A DNA stretch of 64,000 nucleotides, taken from the NCBI GenBank assembly GCA_904063045.1, contig CAJFCJ010000005.1, positions 2,846,165 to 2,910,164 of the forward strand, read 5' to 3'. The position numbers and the translations under genes are program-made. Source of the stretch: Dimorphilus gyrociliatus (taxonomy: Eukaryota; Animalia; Annelida). Of the stretch, positions 37,501 through 45,355 are shown piece by piece. The notes beneath the pieces were generated by a model. The model was not told the origin of the DNA. It did no database searches and saw nothing but the letters and a program-made list of their open reading frames with translations. Within the stretch, counting starts at the first letter, position 1. The number at the start of each line of letters is the position of its first letter.

Positions 37501-38962
37501 GGGTATCCTTTCGATGCTGAAGTTGTTTACGGTGATACGGATTCCGTAATGTGTAAATTTGGCGTTAATACAGTTGCCGAAGCAATGGAATTAGGTAAAG
37601 AGGCTGCAGCATATATTTCAGACAAATTTATTGATCCTATAAAATTGGAGTTTGAAAAAGTAATTGTTTAACAGATTTCAAATTTTTGTGACATCATTAA
37701 CTTTCATTTTCTAAATGTAGGTATATTTTCCGTATTTATTAATTAACAAGAAGAGATATGCTGGCCTATATTTTACAAAACCTGACAAGCATGATAAGAT
37801 GGATTGTAAGGGGATTGAAACCGTAAGGAGAGATAATGCTCCATTGGTAGCAAATCTTGTTAACTCATGTCTGCAGAAGATCTTAATTGATCGGTACTTG
37901 TACTCGATTAATATACTCTTTCTATATATTTCTATAATACTTGTATAATAATAATTTAGAGATCCGACGGGAGCAGTTGATTTTGCTAAGCAAAAGATTT
38001 CTGATCTTCTATGTAATAGAGTTGATATTTCATTATTAGTTATTACTAAGGAACTAACTAAAACGGATGACGAATATGCTGCTAAACAAGCTCACGTTGA
38101 ATTGGCTAACAAGTAATTGAAATTTAATATTATTCCTTATACATATGTAAATGAGTAATTAATTTTTGGTAGGATGAAGAAAAGAGATCCGGGAAGTGCT
38201 CCTCAACTTGGAGACAGAGTACCATATGTTGTAATTGCTGGAGCTAAAGGAGCAGCAGCGTATATGAAATCAGAAGTAACTTTTTCACTCTTTACTTCTG
38301 TTATCAAATATTATATTCTGCATTTTATTAGGATCCCATCTACGTTCTGGAGCATAACATACCAATAGATACCCAATATTACTTGGAAAATCAACTTGCA
38401 AAGCCACTTCTAAGAATCTTTGAACCTATATTAGGAGGGGATAAAAAAGCTGAAAGCGAATTACTTCGTAAGCATTTTAAACATCACTTGAACGTAGGAT
38501 AATCATAATGGAAAATTTCTTTTTGAAATAAAGATGGGGATCATACGAGAACCAAAACAGTCGTTACTTCAAAAGTTGGAGGATTAGCAGCCTTCACCAA
38601 AAAGAAGAGTACATGTATTGGATGTAAAACCCCCTTAATGAAAGATAATCAGGCTCTGTGTAAACATTGCGCTGTAGATTCATCAGCAATTTACCAAAAA
38701 GAAATCTCTAATCTACAACATTTAGAAGAAAAATTTGCCAAATTGTGGACCCAATGTCAAAGATGTCAAGGTTCATTGCATGAAGATGTTCTTTGTACTA
38801 GGTTTGTAATTAATGTAATATTTTAATTTTAGTGTAGTAATAAAATCTTTTTATTTTTATTATAGCCGTGATTGCCCTATTTTCTATATGAGAAAAAAAG
38901 TACAGAAAGATCTCTCTGATCAAGATAAAACTATAGAGAGATTTGAAAGTTTAAACTGGTGA
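34512..38962 (+). CDS. POLD1: DNA polymerase delta catalytic subunit
   Basis: MDGKRR start; SFDIEC exonuclease motif; LDFSSLYPS; KLSANSVYG; YGDTDS; C-terminal Cys clusters. Confidence 0.98.
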
Positions 38963-39239: not shown

Positions 39240-39249
39240 GCGCATGCGC
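39240..39249. promoter_or_regulatory. NRF1/Ewg-type palindrome GCGCATGCGC at the SMYD/FANCA 5' end
   Basis: Exact sequence 6 nt upstream of ATG 39256; an E2F-like ccgcggcaaaa lies at about 39213. Confidence 0.5.
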
Positions 39250-39255
39250 TAAGGA

Positions 39256-42200
39256 ATGTCTAACTTACAGCAAAATCTTGTTCAAAATCATCTTAATATT
39301 GTAAGTGAGCATTTGGTAGGCTATTCGTTTTTCCAGAAATTTTGTGAACTGGACAGTTTCTTTGAAAAAGCAAAACTTGTTAGAGAACTTGAGTAAGTAA
39401 TTTTAGTTTTATTCCCAGTAAAGTTTTTGGTATTGTATTATCGCTCAGGTAGACGAGCTAACCGGTAGATAATCTTGAATGATGTCTCAGTTTCCTCGAA
39501 CAAAAAAACGTAAGATTGAAAGTATTCAGAGCCAAGCATTAGCCATAATTACTGGTGATTATATGGAATGTATGCAGCATTCTTGGAAAAATTCGCCTTC
39601 AAAGAACCAAGTGAAAAAGGAGCTCTTAGAGATCATAAAAGCAACAGATCCAAATGATTATCTCATATATCCAGACAAAGTAAACTTAAATGTCTCTTCT
39701 GCTTTCGAATTTTATTATCAAGCGTTTAGTGCAAGATTAAAGAAGATACAAGTTCCAAATGAAAGATACTTCAATGATGTGCTCTTTGACTTTTTCCAGG
39801 ATTCTTTAACAACTGTAGAAGAATTTAATGACAATATTGTAAAATTGGCTTATTTAATATGCTCGATTAAATCAATTGAGAAAGTTTTACAAGAACGGGG
39901 CAAAAATCTTAGCCAAAGCTTCTTTGATGAAGTAATAGAACATCATAATTCCTTAGAAGTCCTCTTAGCCATCACCATGTCTCGCAACTATGTTGAATAT
40001 GTTGTAAAACACTATAATAACATTTTACTGAAGGAGATTATACTAAAATGTAAAACTGGAGAAGAAAATTCGCAATTAATTAATAAAACTGTAAGGGAAC
40101 TGCTAAAATCAGAAAGTAATTCTGTCAAAGATTTTCTTAATGTGTTCATTAAGTCTTATGTAGAAAATTTGGACGATATCCAAATAAGGGCTGATAAGTT
40201 TTTTGAAAATGTTGATGCAAAAGATATGAGAACATTGATGAAAGGCTTTGTAACTAATTCTTTTACTTTTGGGGAGACCGTACATATAAATGAAGCTATT
40301 AGGCGTCAAAGTTCGTGGACAAGCGATACTTTAACAGGACAAAGGCCCTTATGGACAAGTGTTTGTAAATTTCTTAATTTTGAACATATTTTAAGTTGTA
40401 TAGAAAATGCTGCGAAATGTTCATCGGATTTGAATTGGAGACGAATATTATACTTCTTTGAACTCGACAATTTTGTTCATGAATATGATGTTGAAAGTAT
40501 TACTAAGAGATTTTATAGATTTATCGACAATCTCATTATTAATTCGTTTAAAGACAAAGATGTCATGAGAAAAAATCAAAATATAGGATTAAAAATAGCT
40601 CTTTTCCTTGTTCGCCACGTTTCCTGTTTAGAATTGGATGGTATACATTTATATAGTTCCTGGTTTGAAAATACCTTTGGGAACAACGGAAAAATTTTGA
40701 AAAACAACTCAACTCTTCAGTGCTTCGCGAAGACATTAATCGATTTGATACCATTTGAGGATCCTTTCTACCTTAAAATTCACATCATTAAAAAACCCAC
40801 ACGAGCAGGTGATCTGTATCAAGAATATAAAGAATGTGCTCATGCTCGATTGAATGACATAAATGAACCAATACCTAAAACTGGCGTTATCCTTGTCCAG
40901 CCCGGAGTGAAGAATAAGACAAGCGAAAAAGCAAAACTTCTTTTAGAAAATGCCCTAGAATATTTTAAAACATCTGGAAAGATAAGTGATCAAGTTATGC
41001 AAGCAAGCGTATTTTCAGCACCCTTTTATGCTAATGAATTTGTTACCGCACTCTTAGAACCTGGAGCCTTGTCGGAGAAAAAACTAAGAGGCGAATTTAT
41101 TCAAAAGCTTCATAAAGCAGGAAAACTTGAGGCACACTTTGTCGAAAAATATGAAAGAGCTTGTGAAGAAAAGGAAAAGAATAAGATTATAGATATTGTG
41201 AAAAGTGAAGGCGATGTTTTAAATGAGAAGTTAAATAAAATTGAAAGTCAACTTGTGGAATCATCAAGACTGGGTATAGAAGAAATGACAACTTCTTTCC
41301 GACTCTATGTCCAATATTTAAAATTATTAATTGAAAATAAGGAAGAGAAACGTCATTTCCTTCTGTTTGAAAGATTTGTCGAATGTATCTCTAAATTGGA
41401 AACTGATCCGTATGACATGATTTGCAATCTCTTTATGGCCAAAACTGTCTATAAAGCTACTGTAAAAGCTTTTATGAATTGGATAATAAAGATTATCAGC
41501 AAAAGTGAAAGCGATTATGACTCATCTATAAGAAAGACTATTGGGATATTTGTAAATATTATTCTCTCTCAACCAGAAATCTCAAGCGAAGAATTTTATA
41601 ACGCCTTTCTAAACCCTATTACATCCATTGACCGCTGTTTCTTTCTTCTTGACATCTTAAATAGTTGCTTTCAAATATCTATAGATAACGTTGGAAATTT
41701 ACCGTTATTATTTTATTGGTTTTGTCTAAGACTTAAAAGAAGTCATCAGAATCTCTTATCAAAATATAAAACTGTCCGGAAATCCATAAAACTACAAATG
41801 GACGTTCAACAATGGATAGATTTTGAATTTTTAATAGATAAAGAAATATTAACAGATGAAGATGTTTCGTTATTTCTCAATTTAATTCTTCCATCTTATG
41901 GAAGTATTGATAAAGTATTTGAAAAAGTTTTTCGTGCAGTAGTCTGTAAAAAAAGAAGACCGAAACAACATATTATAGTTATGCTACAAAATATCTTTTT
42001 AAGACTTCAAATGGATAAATTAAAAGATTTAGGAACGACTAATTTGCCTTTTTTTATTGATTTTTTTGATAAAACTTTAAAAAATGTACACTCAGCAACT
42101 GTTACTGAAGAAGAGATTTTTATCATTATTTTGGACTTGTTACTGAAAATTCTTTCACCCGAATGGTTCAACAATTCAAGAATAAAAGGTGTTCAAATCC

Positions 42201-44678
42201 GGGTAACATCAGGAGAACTATTGAAAAGCTTTTTTCAAAAAGTTATTCGATATAAATCATCTTATGGCTTGGAACTTGATTTAATCAATTTTATTATTAA
42301 ATCGCCAGATTCATTGGCATTAATAGAGAGTAGCAAAATTTTGAAATTTTCCATACTGGCCAGAGGATTGTTTCATTATATAAACATTGAACATTGGTTA
42401 CACGAAGGGTGGTGTTCAACAGCAATATCTTATTTTGAAGGGCAGTATTTATCATCACCTCTATGGATACGTCTGTTTTTCTTGGAATATGCAAAACTAA
42501 CCATCGATGGAGAACTTAACAACAAGATAAATGATAGTAAAATCAAAATGGGAGTTGATTGCATTGAACATACTTTGTCATTTTTCCAAATAAGGAATAA
42601 TAATGTCGTTTTAATAAACGATATCTATCACGAATTTGTTCATCCTTTATTCTCAAGGCTCCTTCCTTTTTGTCTTTTACATTTCGTGATGAATAATATG
42701 AATAATATTTCGGAAAAAGTCATCTGTAGCTGTCTCTACGCCTACGTTTTAATATCGAGTGGAAGTGTAAACTTTTTTTCTACAGATATAAGCTCAATGA
42801 AAGCTTTAGAATCTTATGAAAACTTTATGTTTAAATTAGTCCAGCAGAAATTTAACAATGAGGAACTGAGACTTTTACGTAACAAGTTAATTAACTCTTT
42901 GAGAAATGATTGTCTTTTAAAGTGTCAATTTAACAAATTAAACATTTGAAGCTGGTGTTTTCTGTTAATAAATTTAAAATATATTTCCAGTACAAATGAT
43001 GCATTTGTTGATATAATACAACAATTGGCCGAAAATAAGAAATATGACAATTGGTCATTTGAGAGGTATATAAGTTTTAACAAATATTTTCAATATAACT
43101 AAATTTTTTGTACATAACTTACAGAAAAGTATCTAATTCTGATATTTACATAAGTAAATTAGTTAAAAAATGTCAGAATGAGAAATATGGTCGTTTTTAC
43201 ATCGTAAGTTGAATTTGCTAATTGTAATCTTATCATTTGATAGCTGTAAGATTTATTCTCTTTAGGCTAAAGAAGATATATCAGCAGGAGATTTAATCTT
43301 ACAAGAAAAACCTTATACCTCTATTATTGTCAATCAACCAGATTCGACAAAATATGGAGTTTGTTCTGAATGCTTTATACTTTGTCAGCAAACTTTTAAG
43401 TAAGAATATATGAATTTTTTTGCAAGTTTTCAATATTTTCAATATGATATAAGGTTTTATTTTTGCTGTTTAGATGTCCAAAATGTGATTTAATTATATT
43501 TTGCTCGGATGAATGTTTAAGAGAAGGTTTAGCAAAATATCATGGCTATGAATGTAAATTTTACAAGCTACTTTCTATGGTATCTATTGATTTAAAAAAT
43601 ATTCTACTAATTTGCATATTTCTTATCCACTTTTTTGCAGTGTGGAATTGCTCATTTAGCCATTAGAACTCTTTTCTCCACTGATTTTAAATCATTACTA
43701 ATAGATGATAATCTCGATAAACCTGCATTGGCTAAATACAAACAAATTTATGAATTAGAACCATCAATGAGCTTTGATCCTGTTGATTCTCTTCAATTTG
43801 CAGTTATGGCAGATTTAATGACGAATGTAGCTTTAAAATCAAATTGGTGTGATGAAAATTTTCAAATCACGAAAAATCACGAAAACAAAATATGTGGCCT
43901 TCTGTTTCGCCATATTTTACAGTTGATTAATAATGGACAGACTGTTAGTATAAAACAAACGTACAATTTTGCAGTTGAAAGCGTAAATGTTGGGAGTGCT
44001 ATTCTACCAAATTTTGCAATGTTTAATCATTCTTGCCTACCAAATGTTATGCATAATTACGAAAACGGAAAAATAGTTGTTAGAGCTAGTACAGATATCA
44101 AAGCAGGTTCACAAATTTTCAATTGTTATGGAGCTCAAGCGGGTCTTATGAGCTATCAACAGAGGAAAAATATTTTATCCCAATATGGATTCCAATGCGA
44201 TTGCGAAGCATGTTGTAATAGAATTGATATGGATAAAAATGCGTTTGGAAATTATACATGCGAATTCAAAACTGCCCATTTGACGGACAGCCAAGAACTT
44301 TTGGCATCTTTTGTAATACAATTTCTATTTGTTGGATCAAAACTTCTTTCACCTCAGCATAATCTGCTTGAAGAATCACGACGAAAGATATATAGTTCAC
44401 CCTTAATGACAGCTGGAGACCTAAAATATTTTGGTATTCATTTAGCTATACAAAGTTGCGAGAGGAACGAACAATTTTTTGGTAGACGTTCTCTAGAATT
44501 AGCAAATAATTATTTGTCATGTTCAACATTAGCAGCAATGTTTAAAGACGAAGAAATGAATAAGAAATTTGGAGAAAGAGCCTTAGATATCTTTAAGACT
44601 TTTTACGGAGAAAAAAGCGTCCATTATTTTACAGCATTGAAAGCCTTAACATTGGGTAGTCTAATGAAGAGATTGTAA
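39256..44678 (+). CDS. SMYD-family (SMYD4/SmydA-like) SET-MYND lysine methyltransferase whose 3.6-kb intron contains FANCA
   Basis: 5' exon(s) 39256-39392 end in phase 2 (CTT GA|gtaagt) and join in frame to the exon starting at 42991; then NEKYGRFYIAKEDISAGDLILQEKP (SET-N), MYND Cys cluster, FNHSCLPN and NCYG. Confidence 0.75.
39479..42949 (+). CDS. FANCA: Fanconi anaemia group A protein, single-exon 1156-aa ORF
   Basis: YSSWFENTFG; LIDLIPFEDPFYLKIHI...YKECAHARLNDI; FKTSGKISDQVMQASVFSAPFYANEFVTALL all recall conserved FANCA blocks; N-terminal basic KKRK. Confidence 0.8.
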   Translation: MMSQFPRTKKRKIESIQSQALAIITGDYMECMQHSWKNSPSKNQVKKELLEIIKATDPNDYLIYPDKVNLNVSSAFEFYYQAFSARLKKIQVPNERYFNDVLFDFFQDSLTTVEEFNDNIVKLAYLICSIKSIEKVLQERGKNLSQSFFDEVIEHHNSLEVLLAITMSRNYVEYVVKHYNNILLKEIILKCKTGEENSQLINKTVRELLKSESNSVKDFLNVFIKSYVENLDDIQIRADKFFENVDAKDMRTLMKGFVTNSFTFGETVHINEAIRRQSSWTSDTLTGQRPLWTSVCKFLNFEHILSCIENAAKCSSDLNWRRILYFFELDNFVHEYDVESITKRFYRFIDNLIINSFKDKDVMRKNQNIGLKIALFLVRHVSCLELDGIHLYSSWFENTFGNNGKILKNNSTLQCFAKTLIDLIPFEDPFYLKIHIIKKPTRAGDLYQEYKECAHARLNDINEPIPKTGVILVQPGVKNKTSEKAKLLLENALEYFKTSGKISDQVMQASVFSAPFYANEFVTALLEPGALSEKKLRGEFIQKLHKAGKLEAHFVEKYERACEEKEKNKIIDIVKSEGDVLNEKLNKIESQLVESSRLGIEEMTTSFRLYVQYLKLLIENKEEKRHFLLFERFVECISKLETDPYDMICNLFMAKTVYKATVKAFMNWIIKIISKSESDYDSSIRKTIGIFVNIILSQPEISSEEFYNAFLNPITSIDRCFFLLDILNSCFQISIDNVGNLPLLFYWFCLRLKRSHQNLLSKYKTVRKSIKLQMDVQQWIDFEFLIDKEILTDEDVSLFLNLILPSYGSIDKVFEKVFRAVVCKKRRPKQHIIVMLQNIFLRLQMDKLKDLGTTNLPFFIDFFDKTLKNVHSATVTEEEIFIIILDLLLKILSPEWFNNSRIKGVQIRVTSGELLKSFFQKVIRYKSSYGLELDLINFIIKSPDSLALIESSKILKFSILARGLFHYINIEHWLHEGWCSTAISYFEGQYLSSPLWIRLFFLEYAKLTIDGELNNKINDSKIKMGVDCIEHTLSFFQIRNNNVVLINDIYHEFVHPLFSRLLPFCLLHFVMNNMNNISEKVICSCLYAYVLISSGSVNFFSTDISSMKALESYENFMFKLVQQKFNNEELRLLRNKLINSLRNDCLLKCQFNKLNI

Positions 44679-44758: not shown

Positions 44759-45355
44759 ATGAACTTTATTATTATATTCTATTTTGTTCTATTTTTAATC
44801 GAAAATTGCTATTCTTTCAGTTGTTATCATTATAATATTACTAGATGTTTGAAACCAAATACAACTTATTGTCAAAAATTATACGAAAATTGTCAAGCTA
44901 ATCAAACTACTTGTCATACTTTATTGGCTAAGTTCAGTTCAAAATTCGTAATACTATTTATGGGATGTAGTTCATATTGTAAATATAATCAAAATGCTAC
45001 AAATTCTTGTAATACTGTTCAAGTTTCTAATGTTGAAACGCAAGAGATGGAATTTCATTATTGTTGTTGTAATACAAGTAATTGTAATAAAGAATTTCAT
45101 CAGAAGGAACACGTCAATTGGTTAGATGTGGATAAAAGATTAAGGGTATTAATACCTTTCAAATATCTGGAAAGTGAACGGAGGCAACAGTCGACTATAA
45201 AGATAATAATGACTATGTTACTTTTAATATTATTGCTACCAATTATATTTTGTTTAGTTTTTAAAACTCTTAGAGAATTTTTCATAAATAAGTATCGATT
45301 ATTTAAAAGAAATTACCAATTTGTTAAACTGTCGTTCAAAAATCAAGAAAAATAG
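44759..45355 (+). CDS. Single-pass membrane protein with an activin/TGF-beta-receptor-like three-finger ectodomain and no kinase
   Basis: Signal peptide, Cys-rich ectodomain ending in YCCCNTSNCN, TM segment IIMTMLLLILLLPIIFCLVF, about 30-aa basic tail, then stop. Confidence 0.7.
   Translation: MNFIIIFYFVLFLIENCYSFSCYHYNITRCLKPNTTYCQKLYENCQANQTTCHTLLAKFSSKFVILFMGCSSYCKYNQNATNSCNTVQVSNVETQEMEFHYCCCNTSNCNKEFHQKEHVNWLDVDKRLRVLIPFKYLESERRQQSTIKIIMTMLLLILLLPIIFCLVFKTLREFFINKYRLFKRNYQFVKLSFKNQEK

Follow-up and report, generated by a model that had tools for sequence, protein, structure and literature searches.

An intronless FANCA gene in the probable first intron of a SMYD4-like gene of the annelid Dimorphilus gyrociliatus

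Introduction

Retrocopies that lie in the introns of host genes and are expressed with host 5′ exons have been documented, as in the case of mouse Taf9 in Ak6, and so have orphan retrogenes, which took the place of their parents (PMC4772013). In a second arrangement, the ChAT/VAChT locus, the first intron of ChAT houses the single-exon open reading frame (ORF) of VAChT in the same orientation, and this layout is conserved between species (PMC3053374). A third kind is formed by the intronic polyadenylation or alternative last exon switches, whose usual products are truncated or variant forms of a single protein. Here we describe a locus of Dimorphilus gyrociliatus in which the first intron of a SMYD4-like gene (hereafter SMYD) very probably encloses an intronless FANCA gene of the same orientation. 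The locus is part of a stretch of 64,000 nucleotides (nt), called the window below, that corresponds to contig C5:2846165-2910164 of a 78-Mb assembly, and that consists of AT-rich animal DNA (about 31% GC) with short introns.

As in Taf9/Ak6 and the orphan retrogenes, FANCA is here intronless although it is normally intron-rich, and it is very probably placed in the same orientation in the intron of an unrelated host, beside the first exon and the promoter of that host. No parental FANCA copy is left, as is the case for orphan retrogenes. Unlike Taf9/Ak6, the FANCA locus is known from DNA only and carries no visible poly(A) remnant or target-site duplication, and the exon that it would share with its host would be coding for the latter and a long upstream ORF (uORF) for the guest. 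The features quoted above for ChAT/VAChT are all found at the FANCA-SMYD locus, which may likewise have internal promoters, a 5′ exon common to both genes, or both. However, ChAT and VAChT belong to a single pathway and the exon that they have in common does not code for protein, and the conservation of the FANCA-SMYD pair spans only two dinophilid-grade species. We know of no functional link between FANCA and SMYD4. If exon 1 is shared, FANCA would be an alternative terminal exon, as in intronic polyadenylation switches, but the products proposed here would be two unrelated full-length proteins. Arrangements of this kind have been described before, and the FANCA-SMYD locus is a new conserved case of it in an annelid reported to be without operons.

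Results

A conserved upstream exon as the probable start of SMYD

The cross-species comparison used throughout covers two species, D. gyrociliatus and a relative that is represented by a Logan contig of 52 kb (L001), on which REV3, a small exon, FANCA, the SMYD exons, an ORF of 195 amino acids (aa) and DNMT1 follow each other in this order. Reading frames were checked, and matched to the deposited D. gyrociliatus protein DgyrCDS3761 (P0004), with the SMYD exons after exon 1 joined and exon 1 excluded; the translation of these five exons equals exactly residues 1033-1508 of the deposited protein. Their acceptor, ttccag/T at 42991, is located 41 nt past the FANCA TGA, and no ATG was found among the 14 in-frame codons of the spacer between the FANCA stop and this acceptor. 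The first in-frame methionine of the SMYD exons is residue 131, the final residue of the exon that encodes the end of the MYND finger, so that a protein begun at this position would be devoid of the SET N-lobe and of the MYND finger.

A preliminary description of this DNA had placed the start of SMYD in a small exon upstream of FANCA (exon 1, Table 1), which joins 42991 in frame and thereby encloses FANCA in a SMYD intron of 3.6 kb. All its statements on the sequence, including those on the acceptor, on the spacer devoid of ATG and on this join, agreed with the letters at the coordinates that it gave. The phase-2 donor of exon 1 supplies GA and the distal acceptor supplies T, which gives GAT (Asp). 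The relative has an exon 1 at L001 5434-5570 with an identical ATG position, the same length of 137 nt and a phase-2 GTAAGTA donor, and this exon joins the SMYD acceptor ttgcag/T of that species as AAT, which makes the codon at the distal splice a sense codon in both species. The encoded peptides are identical in 20 of 45 residues, with nonsynonymous (dN) and synonymous (dS) divergences of 0.40 and 1.26, the latter being saturated. In both species the other two frames of exon 1 are full of stops, and we estimated from base composition that an open frame of 45 codons would arise by chance in such AT-rich DNA in about 3% of cases per species. Since the ATG, the length of 137 nt, the open frame and the phase-2 donor have been kept despite a dS of about 1.3, the conservation of exon 1 goes beyond chance. 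The following SMYD exons of the relative are equally long as those of D. gyrociliatus (75, 79, 134 and 106 nt), and in its exons 2-5 the reading frame is free of ATG codons up to the end of the MYND finger.

Because exon 1 is kept in the relative together with the phase of the distal acceptor and the absence of an ATG, it is very probably the start of SMYD. As deduced from DNA, this phase-matched, conserved exon places FANCA wholly inside a same-strand host intron, since SMYD has no other start. We consider it highly probable that the SMYD start codon resides in exon 1 and that FANCA is contained in SMYD intron 1.

Several points weigh against this assignment. The exon-1 peptide showed no significant similarity to SMYD4 N-termini (hhalign, probability 0.2%), and the deposited annotation, which was made with transcript evidence, omits exon 1. 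Furthermore, only two species could be compared, and the contigs of the relative obtained from five runs are identical, with no polymorphism among them. No third species with the locus was found among 1.8 billion representatives or in metagenome contigs, and the locus is without mention in paper supplements or under its gene id. As a lead only, a resemblance of the FFQKF/GFFKKF kind was noted between the exon-1 peptide and SMYD4 N-termini.

SMYD might instead be a gene of its own, downstream of FANCA, that makes no use of exon 1 and begins in an unrecognised exon, at a non-AUG codon or in the FANCA 3′ region, in which case the small ORF would be only a conserved uORF or micropeptide of FANCA. 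Such a gene would be in line with a peptide that is not detectably SMYD4-like, would do without an intron of 3.6 kb, very long for the D. gyrociliatus genome, and could draw on the fact that the relative, unlike D. gyrociliatus, has an in-frame ATG 21 codons before the SMYD acceptor. Nevertheless, the donor and acceptor phases agree in both species, SMYD exons 2-5 lack an ATG before the MYND end in both and the D. gyrociliatus spacer has none either, and without an upstream exon the protein would start past the MYND finger. SMYD is also clearly under selection, as its last exon is 58% identical to the protein of the relative (P0001) with an intact ORF. We therefore regard a separate SMYD gene as unlikely. 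The ATG of the relative is separated from the exon-2 acceptor by no stop (L001 9153-9217); it could provide an alternative SMYD start from an unspliced exon in that species, and has no counterpart in D. gyrociliatus.

The preliminary description had also considered a 36-nt intron within exon 1 (39301-39336, GTAAGT...TTTTTCCAG) and a splice from the phase-0 donor at 39301 to 39491 in the FANCA frame. As an obligatory intron the former was rejected, because the relative has TGCAGT in place of GTAAGT and the 12 codons show the conservation of coding sequence, and the latter had to be abandoned as well, its donor being absent in the relative. The 39301-39336 segment is in frame and, in D. gyrociliatus only, could be a species-specific exitron.

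The deposited FANCA-SMYD fusion

The FANCA ORF matches DgyrCDS3761 at 100% identity. This deposited protein of 1508 aa, which is named SMYD4 in UniRef, joins FANCA residues 2-1034 (1-1033 of the model) to the SMYD exons, and would require either a donor within FANCA or readthrough of the FANCA TGA. In D. gyrociliatus such a fusion is helped by the coincidence of frames, since SMYD exon 2 shares the FANCA frame and 14 sense codons follow the TGA, and the deposited protein is built in this way. In the relative, by contrast, the two frames differ and stops intervene between them. The model relies on a very weak donor (TT/gtcatt, at about 42575), where the relative has TTATCA, and its use drops the final 125 residues of FANCA, which are conserved. 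No FANCA-SET fusion was encountered in the other 126 FANCA relatives (E<=0.001, representatives) or in nine looked up by name. Since only D. gyrociliatus has the two genes in a common frame and the relative does not keep the annotated donor, readthrough and fusion were rejected; a true fusion protein is very improbable, and DgyrCDS3761 is probably a chimeric model of two genes.

Identity of the SMYD and FANCA products

Searches for SMYD were performed with the last exon and with the SMYD part of the deposited protein (P0004:1031-1508). The SET domain was recognised by Pfam with 47.8 bits at residues 50-297 of this part, and the MYND finger reached 20.0 bits, slightly below the cut-off of 22.7, with every Cys/His position aligned. 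The FANCA and SMYD assignments of the preliminary description, which had been made from the letters, were borne out by Fanconi_A_N and SET matches in Pfam, with MYND falling just short. With its NHSC motif and a SET domain that a MYND zinc finger interrupts, the predicted protein belongs to the SMYD family, and structures of SMYD2 and SMYD3 matched at 1e-14. Among named proteins, the SMYD4 proteins of arthropods come closest, at 27-31% identity, and these have TPR domains in Pfam. For the deposited SMYD part, the alignment shows a gap at the N-terminal TPR region of SMYD4 and Pfam gave no TPR match. Judged from its sequence, the D. gyrociliatus protein is SMYD4-like with a short N-terminus.

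The FANCA ORF gave Pfam matches to Fanconi_A_N (PF15865; 68.6 bits, cut-off 27) and FANCA_helical (PF24781; 56.5 bits, cut-off 28), and the human FANCA structures 6lhs and 7kzp matched it at 1.7e-22 and 4.1e-19, respectively. The FANCA of the relative has 1156 aa too, is intronless too and shows 61% protein identity. In an exhaustive search of the 1.8 billion representatives, the next relatives were named FANCA proteins of fish, chiton, nemertean and soft coral with 24-38% identity. Past residue 600 or so neither Pfam nor PDB gave a match; this C-terminal half is conserved with the relative but too diverged for an assignment of the arc and C-terminal domains, which serve FANCA in dimerisation and FANCG binding. 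FANCA is present in a single copy in the assembly.

Table 1. Features of the FANCA-SMYD locus of D. gyrociliatus (positions refer to the window).
Feature	Position	Strand	Remarks
NRF1-like palindrome GCGCATGCGC	39240-39249	.	likely core of a shared promoter; 6 nt ahead of the exon-1 ATG
SMYD exon 1, first coding exon of the SMYD4-like gene (very probable)	39256-39392	+	137 nt (45 codons + 2 nt); phase-2 donor GA/gtaagta
Proximal mini-intron candidate, or FANCA core promoter	39393-39448	+	56 nt; ends in the acceptor TATTATCGCTCAG
SMYD intron 1, inferred	39393-42990	+	3598 nt; contains the entire FANCA gene; phase-2 donor and acceptor match in both species
FANCA leader	39449-39478	+	TTGAATGATGTCTCAG around the FANCA start, invariant in both species
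FANCA ORF	39479-42949	+	intronless, 1156 aa/codons, intact, single copy; supported by Pfam, PDB and the relative
AATAAA, candidate FANCA poly(A) signal	42967-42972	+	between the FANCA stop and the SMYD acceptor, 18 nt before the latter
SMYD exon 2	42991-43065	+	75 nt; identical to the deposited model; exon of the relative equally long
SMYD exon 3	43125-43203	+	79 nt; start of the SET N-lobe
SMYD exon 4	43266-43399	+	134 nt; first half of the MYND finger
SMYD exon 5	43474-43579	+	106 nt; second half of the MYND finger
SMYD last exon	43641-44678	+	SET core (NHSC motif), post-SET and C-terminal domain; Pfam SET

The segment between exon 1 and FANCA

The exon-1 donor and the FANCA ATG are spaced by 86 nt. 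Within this interval, the segment 39393-39448 is 81% identical to that of the relative (56 versus 57 nt), with a z of 6.1, compared with z values of 0.3-3.1 for a set formed by four introns of SMYD, the final intron of REV3 and the stretch from the FANCA stop to the SMYD acceptor. It leads to a proximal acceptor at 39449 that belongs to an invariant 13-mer, TATTATCGCTCAG. This acceptor scored 6.2 in D. gyrociliatus and 7.6 in the relative, both inside the training range, and the distal acceptor scored lower, with 2.1 and 2.4; the underlying weight matrix was built from only 23 inferred local introns and is noisy and rough, such that some true acceptors score poorly. As had been noticed at the outset, joining 39392 to 39449 yields GAG TAG, which closes the exon-1 frame 26 nt ahead of the FANCA ATG, and the conservation of the acceptor now adds to that reading. 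In the relative, the exon-1 ORF continues for ten codons after proximal splicing and terminates at a TGA that abuts the FANCA ATG. In D. gyrociliatus, too, an in-frame TGA immediately precedes the FANCA ATG, which makes an N-terminal extension of FANCA impossible. In a FANCA mRNA that contained exon 1, this exon would function as a uORF.

Six nucleotides upstream of the exon-1 ATG, the element GCGCATGCGC is the sole perfect copy in the window, and it is invariant and located at the same place in the relative; the 150 nt upstream of it are not conserved between both species (z 1.4). At the other end of FANCA, an AATAAA that the preliminary description had pointed out between the FANCA stop and the SMYD acceptor is indeed present, and the relative likewise has one between its FANCA stop and SMYD acceptor (L001 9163-9168). 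It is weak evidence since the motif is common in AT-rich DNA.

The genome of D. gyrociliatus has been reported to have neither operons nor spliced leaders nor trans-splicing, its median intron is of 66 nt with splicing adapted to short introns, its promoters are narrow with pyrimidine-purine initiators, and its untranslated regions (UTRs) are rather long (PMC7854359). In the mechanism that we propose, one promoter region would serve both genes, with exon 1 placed just after the NRF1-type element. Transcripts in which the exon-1 donor is joined to the distal acceptor at 42991 would make SMYD, and those spliced from this donor to 39449, or left unspliced, and cleaved after the AATAAA at 42967 would become FANCA mRNA. 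The 46 codons of the SMYD N-terminus would act as a uORF on the latter, so that translation of FANCA would depend on re-initiation or leaky scanning. A consensus donor and a conserved, decent acceptor 56 nt away would lead one to expect proximal splicing by a spliceosome that favours short introns, and other routes are less likely because no operons or trans-splicing have been reported and splicing is adapted to short introns (PMC7854359). The anatomy of the locus and its conservation in two species are observed, and from them we infer every RNA step of this mechanism. The chance that FANCA mRNA carries exon 1 seems to us just short of even. The stricter version, in which the choice between acceptors at 56 nt and 3.6 kb, together with cleavage 18 nt before the distal acceptor, decides between FANCA and the SMYD4-like product and FANCA is made by re-initiation only, is tentative and has a somewhat lower chance.

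Two considerations speak against a shared exon. A uORF of 46 codons with a purine at -3 should strongly cut the translation of FANCA, and this speaks for a start site of FANCA's own, downstream of that uORF; the conservation of 39393-39448 would suit a FANCA core promoter equally well. In this alternative, FANCA would be an independent nested gene with its own transcription start site (TSS) at 39393-39478, for example at a conserved TCAG, exon 1 would belong to SMYD only, and TSS choice would separate the two mRNAs. The 56-nt segment and the 13-mer are indeed conserved beyond what splice signals need, TCAG resembles the pyrimidine-purine initiator reported for D. gyrociliatus (PMC7854359), and an mRNA without the uORF would be far better translated. 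There are also precedents, as most retrocopies evolve their own promoters (PMC4772013) and VAChT has promoters within the ChAT intron (PMC3053374). On the other hand, with 86 nt from donor to ATG, the 5′ UTR would be of about 30 nt or less in a species with long reported UTRs, neither a second NRF1-like element nor a clear TATA or DPE was seen, and the consensus donor with a good conserved AG at 56 nt suits a short-intron spliceosome. We rate a FANCA-specific internal start as somewhat less probable than the shared exon. An internal start and the shared exon may also coexist, by analogy with the ChAT/VAChT locus (PMC3053374).

Two candidate RNA structures were rejected. A weak conserved helix at 39437-39488 (L001 5616-5668), in which TATCGCTCAG(G/A) pairs with (C/T)TTGAATGATG, encloses the proximal acceptor and the FANCA AUG; with a single compensatory pair and only -4.8 kcal/mol, this local hairpin was not retained as an element. 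Long-range pairing of the proximal intron with the distal acceptor region was not above shuffles (z -0.8 and -0.1).

Origin of the arrangement

In Lottia, FANCA consists of at least 35 coding pieces over 15.6 kb, is not nested, and its neighbours are not SMYD4. Since FANCA is intronless in both species compared here, the loss of introns predates their split. FANCA shedding some 35 or more introns at once would fit the replacement of the parent gene by a copy made from mRNA. After the FANCA stop, no A-tract, poly(A) remnant or flanking repeat was seen, and there is no second copy in the genome. The preliminary description had suggested that a retroposed or intron-purged FANCA captured the SMYD promoter; the intronless, single-copy state agrees with the first part of this proposal, and the capture could have gone in either direction. 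The data fit a history in which FANCA inserted into an intron of SMYD4 and is served by the promoter of this host. They also fit one in which FANCA kept a 5′ exon and intron and SMYD4 captured the first exon of FANCA, with which the lack in SMYD of the TPR N-terminus of its relatives is compatible. The exon-1 peptide does not decide between both directions, as its comparison with SMYD4 N-termini gave nothing significant.

These results allow a public gene model, DgyrCDS3761, to be corrected, which bears on orthology tables and on gene-loss counts in a reference compact genome. They also provide a clean and conserved example of compaction, in which a gene of an essential pathway was stripped of about 35 introns and lodged, 86 nt from exon 1, in the first intron of an unrelated gene. 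If the proposed mechanism holds, FANCA and SMYD would be coupled in a conserved, operon-like manner, in an animal for which operons are reported to be absent. With a shared exon, the locus would lend itself to the study of how competing splice sites and poly(A) sites select one of two unrelated proteins, and of how an ORF is translated downstream of a long coding uORF.

Neighbouring genes

The gene upstream of exon 1 is REV3, which encodes the catalytic subunit of DNA polymerase zeta; its end was located on the plus strand at about 38600-38960 of the window, with a TGA at 38960, about 300 nt before exon 1. This adjacency is kept in the relative (L001 1119-5137). REV3 and FANCA both function in crosslink repair, and their adjacency may be a coincidence.

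Downstream of SMYD, an intronless ORF of 198 aa is present on the plus strand (44759-45355), with a counterpart of 38% identity in the relative (L001 11045-11632). Its product has a signal peptide, a Cys-rich ectodomain with a CCCNxxNCN motif, a single transmembrane helix and a short tail. By language-model comparison, BAMBI and activin-receptor ectodomain proteins are the nearest to it (score 0.89), which is taken as a lead only. In D. gyrociliatus an AATAAA overlaps the SMYD stop codon, and the 198-aa ORF starts 81 nt past that stop; in the relative the distance is of 18 nt, with no AATAAA between. Owing to this short spacing and to the absence of an AATAAA in the relative, either the SMYD 3′ end overlaps the 5′ end of the 198-aa gene or the two genes have a common transcript.

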